Positions 26,636-39,731 of a stretch of 64,000 nt of DNA are shown here, piece after piece. Position 1 is the first letter of the stretch, and the number at the start of each line of letters is the position of its first letter. The translations under genes were made by a program, and so were the position numbers. The notes under the pieces are model-generated. The model searched no databases. It was not told the DNA's origin and saw only the letters and a list, made by a program, of their open reading frames with translations. Origin of the DNA: Oopsacas minuta (taxonomy: Eukaryota > Animalia > Porifera); the NCBI GenBank assembly GCA_024704765.1, contig JAKMXF010000302.1, forward strand, positions 124,001 to 188,000, in the 5' to 3' direction.

Positions 26636-28027
26636 ATGCCTCGTTTCAATGTATCTCTACTACGATACCTCTCTAAGGAAGATTTTCGTGTTTTACATTC
26701 ATTGGAGGTTGGAATGCGTAACCATGAGCTAGTCCCTATGTCCCTTGTATCTGGTATAGCTCAGATCCCACACGGACACATATACAAGATTCTAAGGAAC
26801 CTCTCTCAAAACAATCTTATATCCTACCAACGCAAAAAGCACAGTAAAGTAGAAGGTTACAGATTGACTAATCTCGGCTATGACTATCTTGCTCTTAAAG
26901 CCCTGTCTATGAGAGGAATAATAGCCTCTGTAGGTAATCAAATTGGTAAAGGGAAAGAGTCAGATGTGTATGTTGTAGCGAATAAGGAAGGAGAGCAGCT
27001 GTGTTTAAAAATACACAGATTAGGTAGAATTAGCAGTCGCAATATGACAACCAAGCGTGACTATCTTCATGGCTATCATCACGTGTCTTGGCTTTATCTA
27101 TCTAGAGTTGCTGCGTATAGAGAGTTCTGCTTCCTACAAGAAATGCACAAGATTGGAATACAGGTTCCTAAGCCGATAGATAACAACAGACATTGTGTAG
27201 TTATGCAGTTAATACCAGCCTTTCCCCTCAATCACGTTAAGGAAGTACAAGACCCTATCTCTCTATTCGATAATTTAATTCACATAATAGCACAACTAGC
27301 TGCTGCAGGCTATGTACATGGAGATTTTAATGAATTTAATCTTCTGGTAGATGATGAGGGGATAGTAACCTTGATTGATCTTCCTCAAATGTTACCCTCA
27401 ACTCATCCTCTAGCTAAATCTTATCTGAAACGAGATTTGGACTGTATTAGGGAATTCTTTTGTAAGAGATTTGGTATAAATACTGAGGAGATATCTGTAG
27501 ATAGCATTAAAATGGGAAAAGCCAAGGCGATTAGGGAATTAGAAGGTGAGGTTAATGATGAAATGCTGATAAAACATCTCAGAATAAATCCAGACAATGA
27601 CCTCGATTCGATTCAGAGTGATGAAGATAGCGACGAAGATGATATCGATCTTACTGGGACTAAACAATGTATTGACGAGCAGGCTAGTGCTATAATTGAA
27701 GGAATAGACTCTCTGAATATATCTGATATTAGTCAAAGATTAATTCAAACAGAAGAAGAGATTGGTAAATTTGTTATCGATGAGTTAGAACCTAATTTAA
27801 TTGAAGATTCTAAAGAGAATACTGAATCTACTGATATTCGTTCAGAAGCTAGCTCTGTATTGAGTATTGTGGATATTAAAATGCAAGCAAAATGGAGAGT
27901 TAAGAAGGAATTAATGAAAGAGAAAACTCATCAACGGTCAAGGAGGAAATCCAAAGGTCAAAAGGATCCTAAAGGTAAGGGGAAGAGGTTTAATTCGCAT
28001 GTAACTTCTGATGATTTCTTTATTTAA
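26636..28027 (+). CDS. RIOK2: RIO kinase 2, intronless
   Basis: Winged-helix N-terminus LRYLSKEDFRVL...MRNHELVP, GKGKESDVY, HRLGR, VHGDFNEFN and IDLPQM. Confidence 0.95.
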   Translation: MPRFNVSLLRYLSKEDFRVLHSLEVGMRNHELVPMSLVSGIAQIPHGHIYKILRNLSQNNLISYQRKKHSKVEGYRLTNLGYDYLALKALSMRGIIASVGNQIGKGKESDVYVVANKEGEQLCLKIHRLGRISSRNMTTKRDYLHGYHHVSWLYLSRVAAYREFCFLQEMHKIGIQVPKPIDNNRHCVVMQLIPAFPLNHVKEVQDPISLFDNLIHIIAQLAAAGYVHGDFNEFNLLVDDEGIVTLIDLPQMLPSTHPLAKSYLKRDLDCIREFFCKRFGINTEEISVDSIKMGKAKAIRELEGEVNDEMLIKHLRINPDNDLDSIQSDEDSDEDDIDLTGTKQCIDEQASAIIEGIDSLNISDISQRLIQTEEEIGKFVIDELEPNLIEDSKENTESTDIRSEASSVLSIVDIKMQAKWRVKKELMKEKTHQRSRRKSKGQKDPKGKGKRFNSHVTSDDFFI

Positions 28028-28124
28028 TTTATTGTATTAGCATATTTTAGTGGCATAACTATGATAGAGTTTTTATATACAATATTTGATGTATATTGAG
28101 TAAATATGATACCTTAGTCAGCTT

Positions 28125-31100
28125 ATGAGTTACGATAGTGATGATGATTATGATACACCAATGGAAGATTCCGCTGTAACAGGTTCCATGCTGACACAAA
28201 GCCAGCCGTCTCTATCCGTAATAACAACAGACATACACACTGGAGAGGTATCCTCTGATAGAGACGATGCAGAACAGTTCTCAGAACCTAAGCTTATTGA
28301 TATTCAAGATACAGATGAGAATACTGAAGATAATGTTATTAATATAGAAGTAGCTCCTTCTAGTAGTGAAATAGTTGGTGATGAAGATCCTGAAGTTGTG
28401 AAAGCTAGAGAAAAAGAGAGAATGGAACTCCAGAAGAAATATCAAGAGGAAGCTGCCACGTATTTTCCTGGTTACAAGCCTGATAGTGTGCTAAGATTCC
28501 AGAGTTTATTTGCAGTTAATGTTCCTGCTTCTATATCAGATGTCTGGGAGAGTGCTAGAAAGCCTAAACTCAAGAAAAAACATAAATTCCATCAACACAA
28601 TTTCAGTACTACTACCGAGCCTCCACCTGCTTATCTACCAGATGACGAGATTGAGTTTCTGCGTACATGGTCTGAGGAAAAGTGTAAAGAAATTCAGAAC
28701 GTAGATCCTAATACTCACTTCTCTTCTGGAAAGAAAGGGAATAAACAAGGTAAAAAGGAGAGAGAATTCCCTGAGTGGAGAATAGGTCCTGCTAAGCTAT
28801 TGTTTGATCAATCAGGAATACCTCTAGAAGCCCCTCCCACATATCAGTACAATTTTATACAAAAAGAGCTGAATATGCCAACAAAAAAGTTAGACGAAGT
28901 AAGTGAAGATGAAAAGAAGCCTCCCTCACCAGATCCAGTTCAATTGGGAAGTTCACAGAGTTTAAATCCACACGCTTTTCTTATGATAACTCAGAAGGAT
29001 TGGGAAAACGACGTCATAATTAACCCTGAGAAACAATTAGACAAAGTTTCTAAGGTTAAAGATGGTAGATGGTATACAGAATCTAAAGGAGCCCCAGGAC
29101 ACACAGATGCTAGTTCTGCGAGAGTTGACACACAGTCCTCTCTCACCAGCACAATATTCCCTCCAGAGAATGAGCGACTCGTAAGTGGTGCATGGATTGA
29201 TGATATTGTATGGGATATGTCCTCTTTCAAGCCTCCCAAGCCTCGCCCCATGGTTATTGACCCTCTGGACTCTGAACTAGCTTTTGATCATTTCTTTTCC
29301 CAGTTTTATGATTCAAAATCTCAGAATCTTGTTAAGAAGAAACATTTTCCAGAAGGACATAATGCTAATGACGATATGTTAGATCCAACTACTGATCCGT
29401 TTAATATATCAAATGATGAGTACTATTGTCTGGTGGAAAGTGGTCGTGAGAGGGCACAAGGTGATGCTCTGGGATATGGTACAAAGATTGAACACTCTAT
29501 CCCAGCCAATCAACTTTCTAACACCCTATTTCCTGCTCAACTGACTCCCTACGAGAAGAGAAGATTGCATCGTCCTCAATTCCCTTCTTTGCGGAAACGA
29601 AGTGAGCCTGAATTCAACTGTGTAACGAATTTGATAAGTCATGCTGATGATAAACACAAAGATAGACAGAGGGAAAGAGACGCTAGTGGAGGAGGAGATG
29701 TCTTCTTCATGAGATCATTTGAAGACCTTTCTGCTAAAGATGGGACCCTCATTTTAGGAGAATATTGTGAGGAACATCCACCTTTAATCTCCATGGTAGG
29801 CATGTCATCTCGTATTATCACATACTACAGGAAAGCTCCCAAAGGAAGTGAACCTTCCCATCAGACCCCCTTCCCCTACGGAGACACGTACCCAGCTAAA
29901 CAGCCCCCATTTCTACTAGGCAAATTAGCTCCAGGAACTCGTATATCCACTATTGACAACAAGCTGTTCACCTCCCCAGTATATCTACACAGTGTACCTG
30001 ATACAGACTTCCTACTAATCAGAACTCGTGAAGGAATATTTATACGTAAAGTTCCTGTTATATTTTGTATCGGACAACAAAACCCTAAGGTAGAGGTACC
30101 ACATCCTAACTCGAGGCAAGCTGGTAACATCATGAAGGATCTGTTCCAGGTTAGACTATACAGAATGTTCTTAGCTAATGATGAAGATCCAAAGCGAGTA
30201 AAGATGGAGGCTGTGAACACTGCTTTCCAGCATCTCTCTGAGAACTTTGTTCGTAAAACATTACGTCAATGCTCTGACCTTGTGAAAGCAGGGCCAGATT
30301 TTTCTTGCTGGGTACTGAAACGAGACTTCCGTCTCCCCACAGAAGAAGAGCTCTGTCTTATAATATCACCTGAACAGCTATGCACTTATTACAGCATGCA
30401 GGCTGGTGAGCAGAGACTCAGAGATGCTGGTTACACTGGTACTGCTATCAGTAGTGAAGCAGAGGATGAGGATTCTGATGATGACGTAGCTAAGATTGAG
30501 GATGAGATTATGACTGCTCCATGGCGTACCACTAAACACTACCTAGCTGCTATGCAAGGCAAATACACACTCAATGTAAATGGAATAGCAGATCCTACTG
30601 GCTGTAACCAAGGTTTTGCTTATATGAAAATGCCTAAGAGATCTTCAGCACAAACACCCATGACTCCCCTCACACCTGTGGGTATATCTCCCTCCTTTGG
30701 AGACCGTCCACGAGCTAATATTCGTGGTACAGATGCAGATCTGAGGAAACTAAGAGTCAACGAGGCTCGAGCTGTTCTAAAGACAAAGTTCAATATTCCT
30801 GACTCTGCGCTTAAGGATATGGGAAGATGGAAATGCATTAGGAAACTGATTGAGTTGTCTAATAGTGCTGTTATACAGGGAGATGGAGGAGGCGTTACTA
30901 AATTTGCAAGGGGAGTCAAAGTAACCCAGTCAGAGCAACAGGATAAATACCGCAAAGATTGTCAGAGAATTTTTGACATACAAAACAAGAATTTAACTTC
31001 TCAGGAGATATTAAGTACAGATGAAGATTCGTCTAGTGGCTCAGAAACTGAGATAGAGTTAGCACGTGATTTGGAGAATATTATGTCTGGATCTTCATTA

Positions 31101-32993
31101 CCTGGTCCTAAACCTCAGAGGGACAGAGATGCCGCTATATCTGGTCTGTCTGCTAGACCTAGTTCTTCTCATCGGAGAAAAACTTCTTTTATTTCTGACA
31201 GAGCTACTACCATCGATTCTGATGAGGAATCAGTGGCTAGCAATCAATCTGTAGTGGGAAGAAGACTGTTGATAAAACGTACTTACAGGAAGGATGGTAG
31301 GGAGTACGTAAGACAGGAAATAGTTAAGAATGCTGCGGTTATTGACGCGTATGTTAAGATAAACAAAGAGAAAGGCAACACTTTAAGAGCTCAGCTACAA
31401 GTTGAGAAGGACAAGGAAGATATGAAGCGACAGAAGAGGAAGTTAATGCAACAACTCCGCAGAATTAAGGGTACTGATGGAAAAGAGAGAGTACCAATAA
31501 GATATCCACATATGGAAACACACAAACCATTTAAGAGACCTTATAGGACAGGAGGAAGTGCTCTCTCTAAAGGAATGCTGAGTCCTAGCAAGACTACAAC
31601 CAAGAAGTGCTCAGCTTGTGGAGAGATTGGTCACCTGAGGAGCAATAGATCCTGCACCTTATACGAGAGGAAATCAGGTAGAGGAGGCTATAAGAAGGGT
31701 AGGCTACATGTTGCTATGACAGAAGAGGAACAGGATAAACTAGTAACAGAGTATTTAGGGCTAGAAGACGATCTGGTTAGAGCTGAAGGCGTGAAACTTC
31801 ACTTCAGTAAGAAACTAGTAGATGAAACGAAAAAAGCTTCAAGAGAAGCTCTTAAACTAAACTTCCCTAACGTTAAAACTCCCCTCTCTCAAACTCTCTC
31901 ATATAGTCCTTTAGGCGGGAAACAACGTAAGAGAGTTCAAAGTACATCTTATGAATATCTGAAAACTCCTGAGAAGGTGAAAAGAAGACGCTCTACTCCC
32001 TTATTATCCTTCTATAGCATTCTAGAGGAAGCTTTTAAAGAGGTTGAGATTCTGCCTGGTGTCCCTGAATTTATGGATCCCGTCTCTTCGAAGTTATATC
32101 CTGAATACAGGGTATATGTCAAATCTCCTATGGACCTCAAGACTATAAAAGAGAATATGTCTAACTACCATTATAAGTGTCAAGAAGAATTCATGGAGCA
32201 TATATCTCTCTTGCTACTGAATTCTACTAGATTTAACGGACCAGATCATGAGCTGACTACTGTAGCTGGGACGATTGTGCAAACTTTTAAGGACTGTTTA
32301 GCTTCAAAATCAGTTCGAATTAGAGAACTAGAGTTGGAGATTAATCCAACAATTGAGAAAGATCCTCAAATCTCTATCTCCTTGATATTCAGAGAGATTA
32401 CAAGAGAAATTAGTATGCTCCCTGAAGCTGCTCACTTCATTTATCCTCTCATTGTAGAGGAAGCTCAGGGATACACTGATATAGTGAAAGAGCCTATATT
32501 CCTTATACAGATATACCAGAGCTGTAAGAAACTAAACTACAGATCTAGGGACGAGTTTCTCTCTCGTATCGATCTATTGGTTAATAATTCTCATAATTAC
32601 TACGGAGCTGATCATACTAATACGAAATGTGCAGATATACTACGTCAGCATGGAATGGAATTGTTAGCTAATTACAGTGAGAAGCTCTCTGAATTAGAAC
32701 AAAAAATCCTCCTTCCTCACAGCCCTTCTAACCTGTTAACAGAAACTGTTGTGAGTGGTAACCTTGATGATACCTCAAAAGAGACCACCTTACAGGAAGG
32801 AGAGATTCTTACGGAGACAACTACATTTGATGACACAATAGTAGGATATGATGAATTCGGAGATATGAATCTGAGAGAGGAAGAGATTACAGACGATATT
32901 TCAGAAGATGAAGCTGGTTACTCGTATGATCAAGTTTATCATTCTTCTGATAATGATGATGTGTATGTAGAAGGTGATGAGAGTAACATTTAA
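28125..32993 (+). CDS. TAF1: TFIID subunit 1 (TAF1), 1622 aa, intronless
   Basis: WRIGPAKLLFD, DPFNISNDEYY, LGEYCEEHPPL and GTDADLRKL. Zinc knuckle CSACGEIGHLRSNRSC and two C-terminal bromodomains. Confidence 0.95.
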   Translation: MSYDSDDDYDTPMEDSAVTGSMLTQSQPSLSVITTDIHTGEVSSDRDDAEQFSEPKLIDIQDTDENTEDNVINIEVAPSSSEIVGDEDPEVVKAREKERMELQKKYQEEAATYFPGYKPDSVLRFQSLFAVNVPASISDVWESARKPKLKKKHKFHQHNFSTTTEPPPAYLPDDEIEFLRTWSEEKCKEIQNVDPNTHFSSGKKGNKQGKKEREFPEWRIGPAKLLFDQSGIPLEAPPTYQYNFIQKELNMPTKKLDEVSEDEKKPPSPDPVQLGSSQSLNPHAFLMITQKDWENDVIINPEKQLDKVSKVKDGRWYTESKGAPGHTDASSARVDTQSSLTSTIFPPENERLVSGAWIDDIVWDMSSFKPPKPRPMVIDPLDSELAFDHFFSQFYDSKSQNLVKKKHFPEGHNANDDMLDPTTDPFNISNDEYYCLVESGRERAQGDALGYGTKIEHSIPANQLSNTLFPAQLTPYEKRRLHRPQFPSLRKRSEPEFNCVTNLISHADDKHKDRQRERDASGGGDVFFMRSFEDLSAKDGTLILGEYCEEHPPLISMVGMSSRIITYYRKAPKGSEPSHQTPFPYGDTYPAKQPPFLLGKLAPGTRISTIDNKLFTSPVYLHSVPDTDFLLIRTREGIFIRKVPVIFCIGQQNPKVEVPHPNSRQAGNIMKDLFQVRLYRMFLANDEDPKRVKMEAVNTAFQHLSENFVRKTLRQCSDLVKAGPDFSCWVLKRDFRLPTEEELCLIISPEQLCTYYSMQAGEQRLRDAGYTGTAISSEAEDEDSDDDVAKIEDEIMTAPWRTTKHYLAAMQGKYTLNVNGIADPTGCNQGFAYMKMPKRSSAQTPMTPLTPVGISPSFGDRPRANIRGTDADLRKLRVNEARAVLKTKFNIPDSALKDMGRWKCIRKLIELSNSAVIQGDGGGVTKFARGVKVTQSEQQDKYRKDCQRIFDIQNKNLTSQEILSTDEDSSSGSETEIELARDLENIMSGSSLPGPKPQRDRDAAISGLSARPSSSHRRKTSFISDRATTIDSDEESVASNQSVVGRRLLIKRTYRKDGREYVRQEIVKNAAVIDAYVKINKEKGNTLRAQLQVEKDKEDMKRQKRKLMQQLRRIKGTDGKERVPIRYPHMETHKPFKRPYRTGGSALSKGMLSPSKTTTKKCSACGEIGHLRSNRSCTLYERKSGRGGYKKGRLHVAMTEEEQDKLVTEYLGLEDDLVRAEGVKLHFSKKLVDETKKASREALKLNFPNVKTPLSQTLSYSPLGGKQRKRVQSTSYEYLKTPEKVKRRRSTPLLSFYSILEEAFKEVEILPGVPEFMDPVSSKLYPEYRVYVKSPMDLKTIKENMSNYHYKCQEEFMEHISLLLLNSTRFNGPDHELTTVAGTIVQTFKDCLASKSVRIRELELEINPTIEKDPQISISLIFREITREISMLPEAAHFIYPLIVEEAQGYTDIVKEPIFLIQIYQSCKKLNYRSRDEFLSRIDLLVNNSHNYYGADHTNTKCADILRQHGMELLANYSEKLSELEQKILLPHSPSNLLTETVVSGNLDDTSKETTLQEGEILTETTTFDDTIVGYDEFGDMNLREEEITDDISEDEAGYSYDQVYHSSDNDDVYVEGDESNI

Positions 32994-33094
32994 TGTTTCT
33001 ATTATGAAAATATTGTTACTTATTTGATTTAATTATTAAATAATAATTTTGTAAGCCCTTGAGTTACATATTATTTATACTTTTGTGTTAGCGC

Positions 33095-33964
33095 ATGATG
33101 ACAGCAATATGCAGGAAGGAACTGGCTATATATGTAGTAGATTCATTCAGTGATAATCCCTACAGTGGTAATCCAGCTGCTGTATGTCTGGTTCCGTTTA
33201 CCTGTGAATTAACTAATGAAGACAAACAGAAAATCGCTAGTGAAATGAATCATTCAGAAACTGCATTCATTCAGGAGCTTAACTCTGAGGAAACATTTGA
33301 TAAATCTTCTCAGTTCAATCTGCAATGGTTTACTCCTACATGTGAAGTATCAATGTGTGGACATGCTACTCTAGCATCTGCTTATGTACTATTCACAGAG
33401 AGTCATAACTGTAATAAGGAGATTGCATTCTTTGCGAAATGTGGCTTGTTAACAACTCAATTTACCCCAGAAGGTGCTGTTTCTATGGATTTCCCTCTTG
33501 CAAGTTTGGAGGATATTGAAGCTGAAGAAATATCTGGTATCTTATCAACCATTCTTACTGAGTCTTGGTGTCAACTGGATACCAAATTCTCCTCGCAACT
33601 CAGCAAATTATTAGTTAGACTGCCAGATGATTTCCCTCTTGAATCTCTGAGTTTTGATATTCAAAATCTCTTACAGCATAAGGGAAAGGTTAGAGGAGTT
33701 ATTCTGACACAAAAAGGATTGGATAAATACGACTTTAAATCTCGCTATTTCTCTCCTTGGAATGGAATACCAGAAGACCCTGTAACTGGTTCTGCCCACA
33801 CAGTACTAGCAGCTTACTGGCACTCTGTATTAGGGAAGAGTGAGTTCTTAGCTCGTCAGTGCTCTAAGAGAGGAGGAGATGTTAGGATTCAGCTAATGGA
33901 TAACAATAGAGTAGCTCTATCAGGATATGCTACTCTAGTATTGAAGGGAACTCTGCTTATATAA
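33095..33964 (+). CDS. PBLD: Phenazine biosynthesis-like (PhzF family) protein, intronless
   Basis: VDSF...GNPAAV, EMNHSETAF, WFTPTCEVSMCGHATLASA and EDPVTGSAH. Confidence 0.92.
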   Translation: MMTAICRKELAIYVVDSFSDNPYSGNPAAVCLVPFTCELTNEDKQKIASEMNHSETAFIQELNSEETFDKSSQFNLQWFTPTCEVSMCGHATLASAYVLFTESHNCNKEIAFFAKCGLLTTQFTPEGAVSMDFPLASLEDIEAEEISGILSTILTESWCQLDTKFSSQLSKLLVRLPDDFPLESLSFDIQNLLQHKGKVRGVILTQKGLDKYDFKSRYFSPWNGIPEDPVTGSAHTVLAAYWHSVLGKSEFLARQCSKRGGDVRIQLMDNNRVALSGYATLVLKGTLLI

Positions 33965-34067
33965 AACTTCCTATTTACTTTTACATGTTCATGTGACAAA
34001 TAGTATAAATGTATATTCTTGAGCATCGTCTTAGCCATTAACTAATTGTCTGTATTTGGCTCTAGTT

Positions 34068-35885
34068 ATGTCTGATTACAGACGGCTATCAGATCACTTC
34101 TTAGCAGAGCAAAACACTCTCTTTTCTCATCCTCGCCTCTCCCAACAGATAATAGATTCTCAAATAGACTACTTCTCTAGTGCTCTATCAGATCTGCAGT
34201 CTAGAGCAGGGCAGCTAGCTGAAGAGAATACTCAACTGCATCAGTTATTGGAGGATAGATCACAACCTTCAATAGAGCAATGTTATGAGCAGAAAGAGCC
34301 AATAGATAGAGATATAGCTGTACCAGAAACAGCTGATTCTCCTATTAGGGAGTGTAGCAAACTATTACAGGCTAATCAACAGGCTCACATAGAGACTAGA
34401 CACAAGTTTGGTATGTTTATATATAATATATATTTATATCAATATTTATACTTACTTATACTAATAGGAAACCTATCAACAGAATTGGGCCTCGTGAGAG
34501 AAGAGAATGCATATCTTAAAAGCAAACTAGCTGTAGAAGAGACAGTACATGAATCTCTCCTAACCAGAGTACAACAGCCCTCTCTATGTGCTGTATGCCA
34601 TTCGTCAGAAGCTATATACCCTCTCCCCTCCCAACAGAAGGAATCTGAGAGAGAATCTCTTCTGCGGAAATTAACAGCTGAGAGAGAGGAGTGTATGCGA
34701 CTACTAACAGGTCTCAGAGATACTCTACAATGTGTGAGAGATAGAGAGAAGGAAGCTATAGCTCAGGTTAAGCAGAGTGTAGAGACTACATCATCTGCTA
34801 TAGAAGAGAAAGATCAAGCACTATTACATGCTATAGAGCTAGAGAGAGAAGTTGATAATATTAACAAGAGACAAGAGTCTCTTCTTAGCTCGGCAGGAGA
34901 ACAGCATGAAGTAGAGTTAGAGGGAGTTAGACGTGAGGCTCAGTATAAATATAATGAATTGGAAGCTAGACTGGGACAAGTTAATTCTGACCTTAAGTTA
35001 AGAGATACAGAGCTTATGTCACTGACACAGACTAAACAAGTTCTAGAACGTAAATTGAAATCATCACAATCTGAAAAGTTTGAGGGTGAATCCAAGAGAA
35101 TGCACACAGTCCATGAGCTACGTAGCAAGGTGGGAGTATTGGAAGCTGAGAAATTGAATTTATCAGGGGTTATAGAGAGTATGAGATTAGAACAAGAGAG
35201 TATTGAAGTAATAAGAATACAAGAATTAGCTAGATCTAGACAGGAAATAGAACAACAGAGATCTTATCTGTCTATCTCAAGAGAAGAGAATGTTAAGCTA
35301 AGGGAGCAAACTTTAGAAGCAGAGACAGACAGGAATAAGTTCAAGAATCAAGTACGGAGTCTCAAATACGAGATTGAATCAATGAAAACTAACATACATA
35401 CTCAAGTTTTGAAACTAGATGAAGCTCATAATTACAAGAATTTGAAAATGATTGAAGAGGTACACAAGTTGAAAGATTGTAATGAAATTCTAAGAACAGA
35501 ATTAGAAGAATATCGTGGGAGAGAATCTCAGATTATAACTAATGGTAGAGATGAGTTGAAACGAGTACAGGGTAGGTTGGAGAAAAAGCTTGTGTCTCTA
35601 GATACTGAATTGGGAGGAACGAAAAGCTCTCTTTTACAAATGAAAATGGCTTACACACAGGGTAGTGAAGAAAATGCTGAGTTCAAGAAGAGTTCTGTTG
35701 AGGATAAGAAGTTGATTAGTAAGTTAGAAAACGATCTTAAAACTTTGAAAGGGAAGCGAAAAGAAGATACGAATAAGATTAAGAATTTAATGATGAGAAA
35801 TAATAGCTTGTTACGTGAGAGGCTACAGCTATGTGAAATGCTGGAGCTGTTCTACCAAAAACCTGGAAAGGAAAGAGAGTTTTGA
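34068..35885 (+). CDS. SDCCAG8: SDCCAG8/CCCAP-like centriolar coiled-coil protein, one 57-nt intron (34411-34467)
   Basis: LCAVCHSSEAI followed by RKLTAEREECMRLL...REKEAIAQVKQ...EKDQALL, and C-terminal LMMRNNSLLRERLQLCE, resemble SDCCAG8 as I recall it. Otherwise a long coiled coil. First ATG taken at 34068. Confidence 0.7.
   Translation: MSDYRRLSDHFLAEQNTLFSHPRLSQQIIDSQIDYFSSALSDLQSRAGQLAEENTQLHQLLEDRSQPSIEQCYEQKEPIDRDIAVPETADSPIRECSKLLQANQQAHIETRHKFGMFIYNIYLYQYLYLLILIGNLSTELGLVREENAYLKSKLAVEETVHESLLTRVQQPSLCAVCHSSEAIYPLPSQQKESERESLLRKLTAEREECMRLLTGLRDTLQCVRDREKEAIAQVKQSVETTSSAIEEKDQALLHAIELEREVDNINKRQESLLSSAGEQHEVELEGVRREAQYKYNELEARLGQVNSDLKLRDTELMSLTQTKQVLERKLKSSQSEKFEGESKRMHTVHELRSKVGVLEAEKLNLSGVIESMRLEQESIEVIRIQELARSRQEIEQQRSYLSISREENVKLREQTLEAETDRNKFKNQVRSLKYEIESMKTNIHTQVLKLDEAHNYKNLKMIEEVHKLKDCNEILRTELEEYRGRESQIITNGRDELKRVQGRLEKKLVSLDTELGGTKSSLLQMKMAYTQGSEENAEFKKSSVEDKKLISKLENDLKTLKGKRKEDTNKIKNLMMRNNSLLRERLQLCEMLELFYQKPGKEREF
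35373..35840 (+). repeat. Diverged duplicated segment A (SDCCAG8 3' part); second copy at 36766-37233
   Basis: IESMKTNIHTQVLKLDEAHN...QLCEM versus IESINTSIRTQVLKLEEAHN...QLCDI, colinear at protein and DNA level. Confidence 0.9.
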
Positions 35886-36018
35886 CAATGTTTCCCTTAT
35901 ATATGCGTTGCATTTTTATACCATTTGTGACTTACCTATCCAACTTACTATCTGTACTTCATTTTAAATGTATATATTTTCTTATACGTATTATTATTTT
36001 CTATTTATTCCAATTAGT

Positions 36019-37236
36019 ATGTCTGAAGATCTCAAATTTAATATAAAGAATTCTCCCACAAATATCTCAGACATATGTACATGTGACATAAATACTCCAG
36101 CTGTAAAGGAAGATACAAACAAACCTAACTCTCCACAGAATTCTATTTTTAAAGTTCCTCGGTCTCATCGTAGGTTTTCTCCTTATTCTAGTCCAAGGCC
36201 TGACCCTGTACTCCTTACGTGTGATAGCAAATCTAATATTCCTATTGTCCAACCGATTATTGGATTAAATGAACAGTCAAATGTTTTCAGGATGGAAATC
36301 GCTAAGTTATTCTTCGGTTCTCTTAGCTGTAAGCCTCTGGACAGGTTAGAAGTTGATATTGAATCATTTAAACTTCATATTCAATTCTCTAATAATGATA
36401 ATACTTTTGAACAACTTTTGCATATACAAGCCTGTAATATAGAATCTGTAGAGATAAGGATGTTGATGGATGATGGTTATATCCTTATTAAACCGAAGGC
36501 TGACATAACCATGCAGCTATCTAGTGATCTAAACCTCAATCCTACTGTCCACTTGAACTACTCAGACCCTCAAATAATAAAGCGTTATGTAACTATGTTA
36601 TTTGAGACCAAACAATATCCACTTGATCGCATCCATCTTACATTTAAAACTTTGTTTGATTTTCCTATTATTTTAATGAATAACTCAAGAGACTCTATTT
36701 CCCCAATGCCCCAAGAAAATTTATACTCGCCATCAAAACGTCATCTTTGCAGTACTGACATGGATATTGAATCTATAAACACAAGTATCCGTACTCAGGT
36801 ACTTAAACTGGAGGAAGCTCATAACATCAAGAATATGAGGCTGATTGAAGAAGTGAGAGAATTGAAATATTCTAACCAAGCATTGAAGGCTAAATTCAAC
36901 GAATTGCAAGAACGAGAATCCAAGATTAAATTCAGCAATCAAGAGGAGTTGAAGAGAGTTTGGAGCAAGTTTGAGAAACAGATCTTGACTCTTGATCAAG
37001 AATTTAGAGAAACGAAAACCTCTCTCTTAGATTTAGAAATATCATACATACAGCGTAGTGAAGAAAACGCTGAGTTAAAAAACCGATCAAGAGAGGATAG
37101 GAGAGAGATAAACAAGTTAGAGACTGAATTGAAAACATTGAGAGAGAAGCGAAAAGAAGATTCAGACAATCTCAAAAAGTTAATGACACTTCATAATAGC
37201 TTATTACAGCAAGGATTTCAACTCTGTGATATCTAA
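36019..37236 (+). CDS. Chimeric protein: SENP-derived middle domain fused to an SDCCAG8-derived C-terminal coiled coil
   Basis: 36292-36666 aligns without gaps to SENP 38250-38624 (78/125 aa identical by hand count). 36766-37233 aligns without gaps to SDCCAG8 35373-35840 (80/156 aa). Start taken at ATG 36019; the ORF track's ATG at 35968 reads like spacer sequence. Confidence 0.85.
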   Translation: MSEDLKFNIKNSPTNISDICTCDINTPAVKEDTNKPNSPQNSIFKVPRSHRRFSPYSSPRPDPVLLTCDSKSNIPIVQPIIGLNEQSNVFRMEIAKLFFGSLSCKPLDRLEVDIESFKLHIQFSNNDNTFEQLLHIQACNIESVEIRMLMDDGYILIKPKADITMQLSSDLNLNPTVHLNYSDPQIIKRYVTMLFETKQYPLDRIHLTFKTLFDFPIILMNNSRDSISPMPQENLYSPSKRHLCSTDMDIESINTSIRTQVLKLEEAHNIKNMRLIEEVRELKYSNQALKAKFNELQERESKIKFSNQEELKRVWSKFEKQILTLDQEFRETKTSLLDLEISYIQRSEENAELKNRSREDRREINKLETELKTLREKRKEDSDNLKKLMTLHNSLLQQGFQLCDI

Positions 37237-37388
37237 AAGTCTACAGGATATACCAGGAACTTCGAAGATAATTTTACAACTATTTTACTTACATATCTCA
37301 CTTTTGAATTGTACTTTTCTTATTATACTATTTCTTTATCGAATATATTACTACTTAATTTCAATATTAATCTCTCATCTGCTTTAGA

Positions 37389-39731
37389 ATGACTCATAAC
37401 AAAGTGAAGATGTGCGGATTAAAGACTCCTCCAGTTAGAATACCCAAAAAGCCTCGTGCCATACATATTGGTAGTCCTGAAGAGAATAGTTTATTTTTTT
37501 CTAGCCTCAATGCTCGAGTATATCCGAAAGGTTCTGATAATTCCACTCAAAAAGTAAAGCTAAAATTAAAAAATGCTTCTTCTTTACCATCTCCAAAGAA
37601 ACTCAGGCCATCTGAGGGCAAAATATCCACCTTACCTAATCTGGTAGCCTATTCAGATGATGATGATGCAGGAGGAATTTCAGATTATGGAACAACTACA
37701 CCAAGTACTAACACAATTGCAGTGAGCAGGACTCAAAAGGATAACAGTATAACTATTAGGCTATTGGAAACTTGTAAGACCAAGAGCAATCCATTCAAGA
37801 CAATAGAATCCAAAACTTTTTATAACAAAACATCTAGTCCTAAAACTTATAAGAGACTTAGAGACACTCATATTACCAGTAGGATACCACCGCTGCCAAT
37901 ACGTAGAGTATCTTCTAAACCGTTTTTATCTGACCAAAATTTCTGTCCTTTCCGTGTAGACGAGGAACTCACACGTAATACAATTCACAGAGAAGATAAA
38001 AAGCATTGCAAGCCGCAATATAAAATAAATAAACTAGAGACCATTGATTTGCTAGAGTATGGCGAAATGAATATTTCTCCTCCTCCAGAGAATAAGGTAG
38101 AATCTAAAAGCCCAGAAATACCGAATCGACCTATACTCCCATCAGAGCCTGAGTCTGAGCCAGATTTCAATCTCTCATACGATTCTCCTCCTCCCCCACT
38201 CATTGAAGATTTTATGGAAATCACAAATGAAATGTTGGACGTGTTTAAAATGGAAATCTTATTATTTTATTTTGGTTCTCTATCCTGTAAGCCTCTAGAT
38301 AGTCTTCAAATTGACAAGGATTATTTTAAACTTCATATCCAGTTCATCAATGGTCAAAATGCCTGTAGTCAGCTGTTTCAAATACAGGCATGTAATATTG
38401 AATCAATTGAGATCAACAGACTAGAGGATAATGGTTATATTTTTATTAAACCCAAGCCTCATGCAACAATCAAACTCTCTAAGGACCTCAACCTTAATCC
38501 TACTCAACACTTGAACGACTCGAGTGTCAATATAATGGAGCGATCAATAACTCTAAGATTTGAGATCAAACAATATCCACTTGATCATATCCACCATACT
38601 CTAAAAGTATTGTTTGAATTTCCTGTCCGTTTGAATACAAATGATAATTATATTCTTCTCATGTTCTTGTTACGTGAAGACTTAGCTCATAACACTATTA
38701 AATCACCCACCAAACCGAATTCACCAGCTCAGCTGCACAATATAACTCTAAGCTCTAGCGACAGTCAAGCCTTTCACGATGAAATTCTTGTAGATGAAGA
38801 AGAACATTCTTATTGTCAAACAAGACAGTCACAAAATCACAGTCATAGATCTCCTCAAGTAATCGAGGAATATAACAAGTTAAGTGAAAGCAATACAGAT
38901 AAGCTTCTTACTTACCCAGCTGTAGGACACTCACGTAGGATAACAATATACAAAGATGCTGTTAGCTGTCTGCTACCTGAAATGTTCTTGAATGACACGA
39001 TAATAGAATTCTATCTTCTCTATATATACCACGAACTCTTCTCCCAAAAGCAGAGAGAACAAGTACACATTTTCAATACTTTCTTCTACACAAAACTTAC
39101 AAACAATTCAAGTGACTCTCTCTCTCCTCAACGCATATCCGAGAAGCATGGTCAAGTTTCTAACTGGACTAAGAATGTCAATCTCTTTGAAAAAGATTTC
39201 ATTGTACTTCCTATACATGATCATGCCCATTGGTTTCTAGCTATTATATGTTATCCTAATCTATTTGGAAAAGACCCTATGACGAGATTAGAAGATGAAT
39301 CAAATCAATTGATAGATTTAGATTCATTGGAGTGTAAGTCTAATCGTAAGAAGAAGCAGTCCGAGAAAAAATCTTGTATCCTAATATTCGATTCCTTGGA
39401 GATCAAAAGGACCACTGTAATATACAATCTCAAGTCATATTTGAAAGCGGAATGGGAGGCTCGCTACAAATCACTCGGTGAATACCCTTTTGATCCCAAA
39501 AATCATTTGATAGGACATCATCCTAAACTACCTATCCAGCCGAATAGTTCTGATTGCGGCTTATTCGTGCTACAATACGCTGAAAGCTTTTTCACAGATC
39601 CTCCTCCAGATTTTACGATTCCTATCAAATTGGAGAAATGGTTCTCATTAGATAAAATTCAAGACAAACGGAATTGTCTTATAAAATTGATATTTGACTT
39701 ATCACAAAACGAAAATTACAAACAAGTGTAG
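37389..39731 (+). CDS. SENP6/7-type SUMO protease (peptidase C48), intronless
   Basis: FLNDTIIEFYL, HIFNTFFY, HWFLAIICYP, ILIFDSL and QPNSSDCGLFVLQYAESF, carrying the His/Asp/Cys catalytic residues. Confidence 0.9.
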   Translation: MTHNKVKMCGLKTPPVRIPKKPRAIHIGSPEENSLFFSSLNARVYPKGSDNSTQKVKLKLKNASSLPSPKKLRPSEGKISTLPNLVAYSDDDDAGGISDYGTTTPSTNTIAVSRTQKDNSITIRLLETCKTKSNPFKTIESKTFYNKTSSPKTYKRLRDTHITSRIPPLPIRRVSSKPFLSDQNFCPFRVDEELTRNTIHREDKKHCKPQYKINKLETIDLLEYGEMNISPPPENKVESKSPEIPNRPILPSEPESEPDFNLSYDSPPPPLIEDFMEITNEMLDVFKMEILLFYFGSLSCKPLDSLQIDKDYFKLHIQFINGQNACSQLFQIQACNIESIEINRLEDNGYIFIKPKPHATIKLSKDLNLNPTQHLNDSSVNIMERSITLRFEIKQYPLDHIHHTLKVLFEFPVRLNTNDNYILLMFLLREDLAHNTIKSPTKPNSPAQLHNITLSSSDSQAFHDEILVDEEEHSYCQTRQSQNHSHRSPQVIEEYNKLSESNTDKLLTYPAVGHSRRITIYKDAVSCLLPEMFLNDTIIEFYLLYIYHELFSQKQREQVHIFNTFFYTKLTNNSSDSLSPQRISEKHGQVSNWTKNVNLFEKDFIVLPIHDHAHWFLAIICYPNLFGKDPMTRLEDESNQLIDLDSLECKSNRKKKQSEKKSCILIFDSLEIKRTTVIYNLKSYLKAEWEARYKSLGEYPFDPKNHLIGHHPKLPIQPNSSDCGLFVLQYAESFFTDPPPDFTIPIKLEKWFSLDKIQDKRNCLIKLIFDLSQNENYKQV
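38250..38624 (+). repeat. Diverged duplicated segment B (SENP middle domain); second copy at 36292-36666
   Basis: Both copies share FGSLSCKPLD, FKLHIQF, IQACNIES, DLNLNPT and KQYPLD in colinear order. Confidence 0.9.

Follow-up and report, generated by a model that had tools for sequence, protein, structure and literature searches.

The closest described analogue of the gene reported here is Sdic of Drosophila melanogaster, which arose by a duplication across the neighbouring genes AnnX and Cdic and sits between its intact parents (PMC3395120). Sdic is under 2 million years old and multi-copy, and its coding region comes from one parent while the other gave promoter elements (PMC3395120). Chimeric tandem duplicates that ignore gene boundaries, in which partial duplicates are fused at the junction, have been reviewed as a class, and most of those known are young and short-lived (PMC3449122). 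Here we describe a chimeric gene from the glass sponge Oopsacas minuta (assembly GCA_024704765.1, contig JAKMXF010000302.1, positions 124,001 to 188,000 of the forward strand; genome paper PMC10280926), which joins the PH-like domain of a SENP6/7-class SUMO protease (SENP below) to the C-terminal coiled coil of SDCCAG8 and lies between these two genes. All coordinates are those of the window, that is, the whole stretch of 64,000 nucleotides (nt) that was analysed.

On the side of the coiled-coil donor, centrosomal localisation and cilium formation in mouse depend on the C-terminal region of Sdccag8, which also binds ICK/MAK (PMC8902618); PCM1 is bound by coiled coils 5-7 of SDCCAG8 (PMC12346347). 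We hold with high confidence that the O. minuta chimera is the product of one duplication across two neighbours and that it has been maintained by purifying selection.

Homology to the neighbours and origin

On the plus strand the order is SDCCAG8, then the chimera with its SENP PH-like domain followed by the SDCCAG8 coil, then SENP, which is the order predicted by one tandem duplication. The features are as follows.

34056-35885, plus strand: open reading frame (ORF) of the SDCCAG8/CCCAP gene (parent 1), whose likely start is the ATG at 34068
35343-35840, plus strand: coiled-coil segment of SDCCAG8 that served as the source of the copy (ORF residues 430-595; BLASTP and DNA match)
35886-36018, plus strand: spacer 1, from the SDCCAG8 stop to the chimera ATG, orthologous to the single SDCCAG8-SENP spacer of the relatives
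36019-37236, plus strand: chimeric gene of 405 amino acids (aa), with disordered N-terminus, PH-like domain, disordered linker and C-terminal coiled coil
36268-36684, plus strand: SENP-derived PH-like domain of the chimera (residues 84-222; BLASTP and AlphaFold2)
36685-36735, plus strand: fusion junction or linker, with no homology detectable to either parent
36736-37233, plus strand: SDCCAG8-derived coiled coil of the chimera (residues 240-405; BLASTP, alignment and AlphaFold2)
37237-37388, plus strand: spacer 2, from the chimera stop to the SENP ATG, the second copy of the ancestral spacer, ending ctgctttag/a
37389-39731, plus strand: SENP6/7-class SUMO protease (parent 2), 780 aa, with Peptidase_C48
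38226-38642, plus strand: parental PH-like domain (SENP residues 280-418; BLASTP against the chimera)

The PH half of the chimera (101-239 in the numbering of a 422-aa ORF counted from 35968) is identical to its SENP counterpart at 84 of 139 residues (60%, 0 gaps, E 5e-51), and the coil half (257-422 in the same numbering) matches SDCCAG8 at 82 of 166 residues (49%, 0 gaps, E 2e-44). At the DNA level, 35370-35839 aligns without gaps to 36763-37232 (67.4% over 470 nt) and 36267-36666 to 38225-38624 (70% over 401 nt), leaving 36667-36762 unaligned, an interval that at the protein level shortens to the junction listed above; the junction has no significant DNA or protein similarity to the flanks of either parent. 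The copied coil maps to about positions 530-694 of 703 in the CCCAP profile, roughly its last 165 positions, and stops 15 codons short of the ancestral stop, with no significant remnant of the 15-codon tail downstream of the chimera stop (z 1.0). The catalytic domain of the parent, a Peptidase_C48 domain of the kind defined by a His-Asp-Cys triad, falls outside the copied part, and Pfam detects no Peptidase_C48 in the chimera; no other Pfam family scores above its cut-off there, and the CCCAP profile gives no match to the chimera coil alone, the chimera spanning only the last quarter of the family length. These values come close to the original prediction, made from the letters of the window, which had described gapless, stop-free copies at about 62% and 51% aa identity (there are indeed 0 stops), a junction around 36667-36765 and an uncopied SUMO-protease catalytic domain.

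As for the parents, the Pfam CCCAP profile (PF15964) aligns residues 146-597 of SDCCAG8 to profile positions 249-696 of 703 at 23.7 bits, which is below the cut-off of 27, and the SDCCAG8 orthologue P0005 reaches 27.3 bits, above it. The NCBI model of O. minuta SDCCAG8 has 586 aa, compared with 605 aa counted from the ATG at 34068; we analysed the gene as a continuous ORF, without joining a spliced model. This ORF crosses a short Tyr/Leu/Ile-rich stretch (34407-34475) that resembles an in-frame mini-intron. The protease has its Peptidase_C48 domain at residues 533-755 (E 9.7e-35), and its best PDB match is human SENP7 (E 6.5e-50), SENP1 scoring only 1e-16; on sequence it is a member of the SENP6/7 class.

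The state before the duplication can be read in three related sponge assemblies (L002, L003 and L004), which keep the plus-strand array RIOK2-TAF1-PBLD-SDCCAG8-SENP; the L002 species, with the sample label BUSC20-1, is probably Vazella pourtalesii. The chimera is absent from all three, and there is no room for it, since the SDCCAG8 stop and the SENP start are separated by only 108, 130 and 138 nt, respectively; other samples of the L002 species contribute five more contigs, in which SDCCAG8 and SENP likewise stand adjacent without the chimera. An exhaustive phmmer/HMMER search of 1.84 billion (1.84e9) protein representatives found no second chimera, only the chimera itself spanning both halves among six matches (the chimera, three full-length SENP orthologues, one SDCCAG8 orthologue and one truncated SENP paralogue). 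A word-index protein search with the chimera returned itself alone, and is uninformative, as the window's own parents were also missed.

The two spacers flanking the chimera carry the same history. By local alignment, spacer 1 is similar to the single L002 spacer (z 11.2, p<0.001), spacer 2 is colinear with the same stretch of it (z 3.2, p 0.011), and within O. minuta spacers 1 and 2 are also alike (z 2.6, p 0.016). Synonymous divergence (dS) from the parents is also similar for both halves, at 1.43 for PH and 1.59-1.64 for the coil. The adjacency of the parents in the relatives, the duplicated spacers and the equal dS therefore indicate one tandem duplication of about 1.95 kb, with breakpoints inside both neighbours as had been predicted. 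At 35343-36735, the first repeat copy falls about 560 nt short of the length of the second, at 36736-38690, which matches the disordered N-terminus of the chimera being about 196 residues shorter than that of SENP.

The course of events was, with high confidence, the following. In the ancestor, SDCCAG8 and a SENP6/7-class protease stood head to tail with about 110-140 nt between them. A tandem duplication of about 1.95 kb started inside the last third of SDCCAG8 and ended just past the PH-like domain of the protease. At its internal junction one reading frame ran on from the 5′ part of SENP, which supplied the PH-like domain and presumably the start codon and disordered N-terminus, into the 3′ part of SDCCAG8, which supplied the terminal coiled coil, and the new gene received copies of both the upstream spacer, acceptor-like signal included, and the downstream spacer. 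Afterwards, the coding region for the disordered N-terminus presumably lost about 0.6 kb or was remodelled over that length, and a stop arose 15 codons ahead of the old one.

The acceptor-like motif ccaattag/tATG stands before the chimera start at 36011-36021, where the original prediction had noted it. Because the duplication copied the spacer together with this site, the chimera would have had the signals of SENP from the start.

Two observations concern the surroundings of these signals. The non-coding spacer 35886-36018 is about 70% identical to L002:9893-10000 although synonymous sites are near saturation, which suggests a constrained 3′-end or acceptor signal with the core ttttatacc. The array as a whole (26636-39731, plus strand) has spacers of about 90-150 nt and (t)tag placed 0-7 nt ahead of the ATG in all six genes, and its order is kept in four sponge assemblies (O. 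minuta, L002, L003 and L004). This pattern would fit spliced-leader acceptors, and perhaps co-transcription; spliced-leader trans-splicing has been reported in the glass sponge Aphrocallistes vastus (PMC10282587). Two further genes of the array, upstream of SDCCAG8, are placed as follows.

28125-32993, plus strand: TAF1-like gene
33095-33964, plus strand: PhzF/PBLD gene

The SENP region has been duplicated elsewhere as well. On another contig of the L004 species there are two truncated SENP paralogues, P0010 (386 aa, L005:8001-9161, plus strand; 65% identical to P0004) and P0006 (298 aa, L005:651-1547, minus strand), both of which start exactly at the PH-like domain and are without the Cys-bearing half of the catalytic domain. 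They represent an independent partial duplication of the same SENP region.

Age of the duplication and selection on the chimera

The proportion of synonymous differences (pS) between the chimera and its parents is 0.64-0.67, compared with 0.60-0.70 between O. minuta and L002 orthologues of five genes, and the duplication is thus about as old as the split of O. minuta from its nearest sampled relative, L002. In comparisons with L003 and L004 the synonymous sites are saturated, so that dating by dS ends at L002. It is close to an even prospect, if somewhat short of one, that the duplication occurred before the O. minuta/L002 split and that the L002 lineage afterwards lost the chimera; unequal crossing-over between the repeat copies, for one, would have returned the locus to precisely its ancestral arrangement. 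A concatenated maximum-likelihood tree of five taxa places the chimera outside the pair of O. minuta parent and L002 (bootstrap 79-85), single-segment trees weakly agree, the chimera coil is equidistant from the SDCCAG8 of O. minuta and of L002 (48% and 49%), and the near equality of paralogue and orthologue pS points the same way. However, an approximately unbiased (AU) test does not reject the chimera and the O. minuta parent as sisters (p 0.15-0.21), a fast copy may be drawn outward by unequal rates, the earlier date needs one extra event (the loss), the taxa number only five, and synonymous sites are near saturation. The original prediction had called the gene old and lineage-specific: its age is borne out by dS of 1.4-1.6, and the chimera is confined to O. 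minuta among the relatives and the protein collection searched, but lineage-specificity has to be refined in that the duplication may be older than the divergence of O. minuta and L002.

Purifying selection has kept the chimera as a protein-coding gene over a time comparable to that since O. minuta and its closest sampled relative parted. The ratio of nonsynonymous to synonymous divergence (dN/dS, or omega) in pairwise comparison is 0.205 for the PH half and 0.21 for the coil, far from the value near 1 that would have spoken against the selection originally proposed, and bootstrap intervals for the corresponding ratio of proportions (pN/pS) are 0.28-0.51 and 0.32-0.52. Total dN is 0.29-0.36, well under half of dS; because it is so far under dS/2, omega could not exceed about 0.4 on the chimera branch if all aa changes were placed there, a bound that the saturation of synonymous sites makes conservative. 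The chimera frame has 0 stops in 405 codons, compared with 15-53 in the other five frames, and simulated neutral evolution leaves the ORF open in 0.1% of runs at 0.1 substitutions per site and in no run from 0.2 upwards.

The two halves differ in how they have changed. Counting unique changes in the chimera versus the parent against three outgroups, the PH copy gives 14 versus 16, 5 versus 17 (p 0.017, with L003 as outgroup) and 7 versus 11; it is no faster than the copy of the parent, the difference being significant with one of the three outgroups. Of the columns without variation among SENP orthologues the PH copy also keeps 29 of 31, and of the hydrophobic columns 37 of 37. For the coil the counts are 44 versus 22, 38 versus 20 and 29 versus 16, about twice as fast as the parent, and 29/52 invariant and 32/37 hydrophobic columns are kept. 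On the parental side, the PH-like domain of O. minuta SENP (38226-38642) has as many lineage-specific aa changes as the chimera copy or more, and constraint on it may have been relaxed after the duplication.

Predicted fold, possible role and alternative readings

The middle domain, which had been suspected from the letters to be PH-like, is modelled by AlphaFold2 from a six-sequence alignment with 89 residues at a predicted local distance difference test score (pLDDT) of at least 90, forming eight strands and capping helices; this core, with pLDDT above 90, agrees with the description of the PH superfold as a seven-stranded beta sandwich with a helix cap. In Foldseek and VIA-align, PH-superfold domains lead the list (Z 11.7-10.3), namely SYCP2 SLD (11.7) and SSRP1 NTD (10.4), then Pob3, Spt16, Rtt106, Sin1, pICln and Vps36, and the PH-like region of RDR2 is also high in the list. 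The same fold is found in ESM Atlas models of chordate SENP6 (template modelling score, TM, 0.60) and SENP7 (TM 0.71) and of plant ULPs that carry the Pfam family PH_ULP, PF25352 (TM 0.57-0.64). By sequence, neither PF25352 nor any PH family matches any member of the PH-domain alignment at E<=10, and the relation to PH_ULP is accordingly drawn from structure and from the position of the domain in the parent protein. In the full-length model, residues 1-85 are disordered, the PH-like domain occupies about 88-222, a disordered linker follows at 224-245 (pLDDT below 50), and two helices span 246-303 and 308-404 (pLDDT 79-95).

What such a product might do can be put forward only tentatively. It could be a non-enzymatic adaptor, having neither a protease domain nor evident SUMO-interaction motifs (SIMs), whose coil may dimerise with SDCCAG8 or sit alongside it at the centrosome or basal body and would display there the conserved PH-like domain, bringing or holding the ligands of this domain. 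The N-terminus of SENP (37389-38225) contains two SIM-like motifs kept in 4/4 orthologues, one around residue 90, a hydrophobic core followed by acidic residues in a run, and one around residue 215, TIDLL, and sequence comparison finds neither of them evident in the chimera.

Alternatively, and in our view doubtfully, the chimera would act as a decoy or regulator without any localising function, its free PH-like domain competing with the protease for a ligand or its diverged coil poisoning or titrating SDCCAG8 dimers. A product without catalytic domain and without the two conserved SIM-like motifs would suit this role, as would a PH copy that keeps nearly all its invariant columns while the parent has 16, 17 and 11 unique changes to its 14, 5 and 7, and a coil whose hydrophobic skeleton is kept. 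However, the relative-rate difference in PH is significant with one of three outgroups only, and the invariant residues lost from the coil fit new partners equally well.

A further reading is that the chimera took over part of what the PH-like domain of the protease did in the ancestor, so that, in an animal both syncytial and flagellated, a SUMO-protease targeting module would have been tethered over a very long span to a centriole/basal-body scaffold. This we consider unlikely; it is suggested by the retention of ancestral residues in the chimera PH copy, the parent copy having as many unique changes or more. If true, it would provide a lineage-specific link from the SUMO-chain editing machinery to cilium or centrosome biology.

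That the chimera is a relic in decay, an ORF without function that the duplication left behind and annotation picked up, is most improbable. The lack of a Pfam match above cut-off and the twofold rate of the coil are what such a relic might show, but dN/dS lies near 0.2, the bootstrap reaching no higher than 0.52, the frame of 405 codons is unbroken at a dS of about 0.7 per lineage, where neutral simulation yields 6-22 stops, and the PH copy has lost only two of 31 invariant columns. That the duplicated pieces are alternative exons (of the SDCCAG8 3′ end and the SENP 5′ part) or an assembly artefact is scarcely credible: mutually exclusive exons are known to arise by tandem exon duplication and the chimera comes from one assembly only, but both parents are continuous ORFs over the breakpoints and hence have no exon boundary there, the PH-like domain, linker and coil lie in a single open frame that has an ATG and an acceptor-like site of its own, and the copies differ by 30-35% in DNA, beyond any collapse or mis-join of identical repeats.

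Several points weigh against reading the locus as a selected gene with the ancestry and adaptor role proposed above. The coil has changed at 23 of 52 otherwise invariant residues and lost the last 15, and may no longer bind the partners of SDCCAG8. The 83 N-terminal residues of the chimera have no significant similarity to the SENP N-terminus (DNA z -1.2; protein z 0.15), and their descent from SENP is for this reason argued from position, the placement of the chimera N-terminus beside the SENP motif TIDLLE by MAFFT being suggestive only. The public annotation carries exactly the 405-aa product, as one record in the public protein collection, but this model is no proof of expression, since the RNA-guided gene calling with Augustus that produced it retained models of 100 aa or more whatever their coverage (PMC10280926). 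Moreover, the O. minuta locus is read from a single assembly.

Comparison with known domains and chimeric genes

Both donor modules have described counterparts. As in the Ulp2/SENP6/SENP7 type, the SENP parent has its PH-like domain N-terminal to Peptidase_C48, and the domain has the same fold as that of the type (PF25352; TM 0.57-0.71 over 113-138 residues), whereas in the chimera it is separated from the protease and joined to a coiled coil. The little-studied SENP6/7-type PH-like domain is thereby drawn to attention, here kept without the protease. The piece copied from SDCCAG8 corresponds to the C-terminal module known from mouse (Sdccag8-C, PMC8902618; coiled coils 5-7, PMC12346347) and differs from that module in being 49% identical to the sponge parent, with those 23 invariant residues changed and the last 15 missing. 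Together the two pieces make a natural experiment on the roles of the PH-like domain and the SDCCAG8 C-terminal module.

As a gene, the chimera belongs to the known Sdic-type class, while its transcription into an mRNA of its own is predicted for the O. minuta case. It involves no new mechanism and is an unusually clean and very old example of gene birth by duplication over the border of two genes: the parents, the junction and the two copies of the spacer are still readable, the outgroups show the state before the duplication, and the new combination of domains is clearly under purifying selection. As with Sdic, sister species have the parents adjacent with nothing between them. Unlike Sdic, the O. 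minuta chimera is single-copy with synonymous sites near saturation, it takes coding domains from both parents in their original frames, and its regulatory spacers were simply duplicated. Among chimeric tandem duplicates that ignore gene boundaries (PMC3449122) it is of the same make, partial duplicates fused at the junction, but in contrast to the young and short-lived majority it has lasted about as long as a deep glass-sponge split, at an omega of about 0.2.

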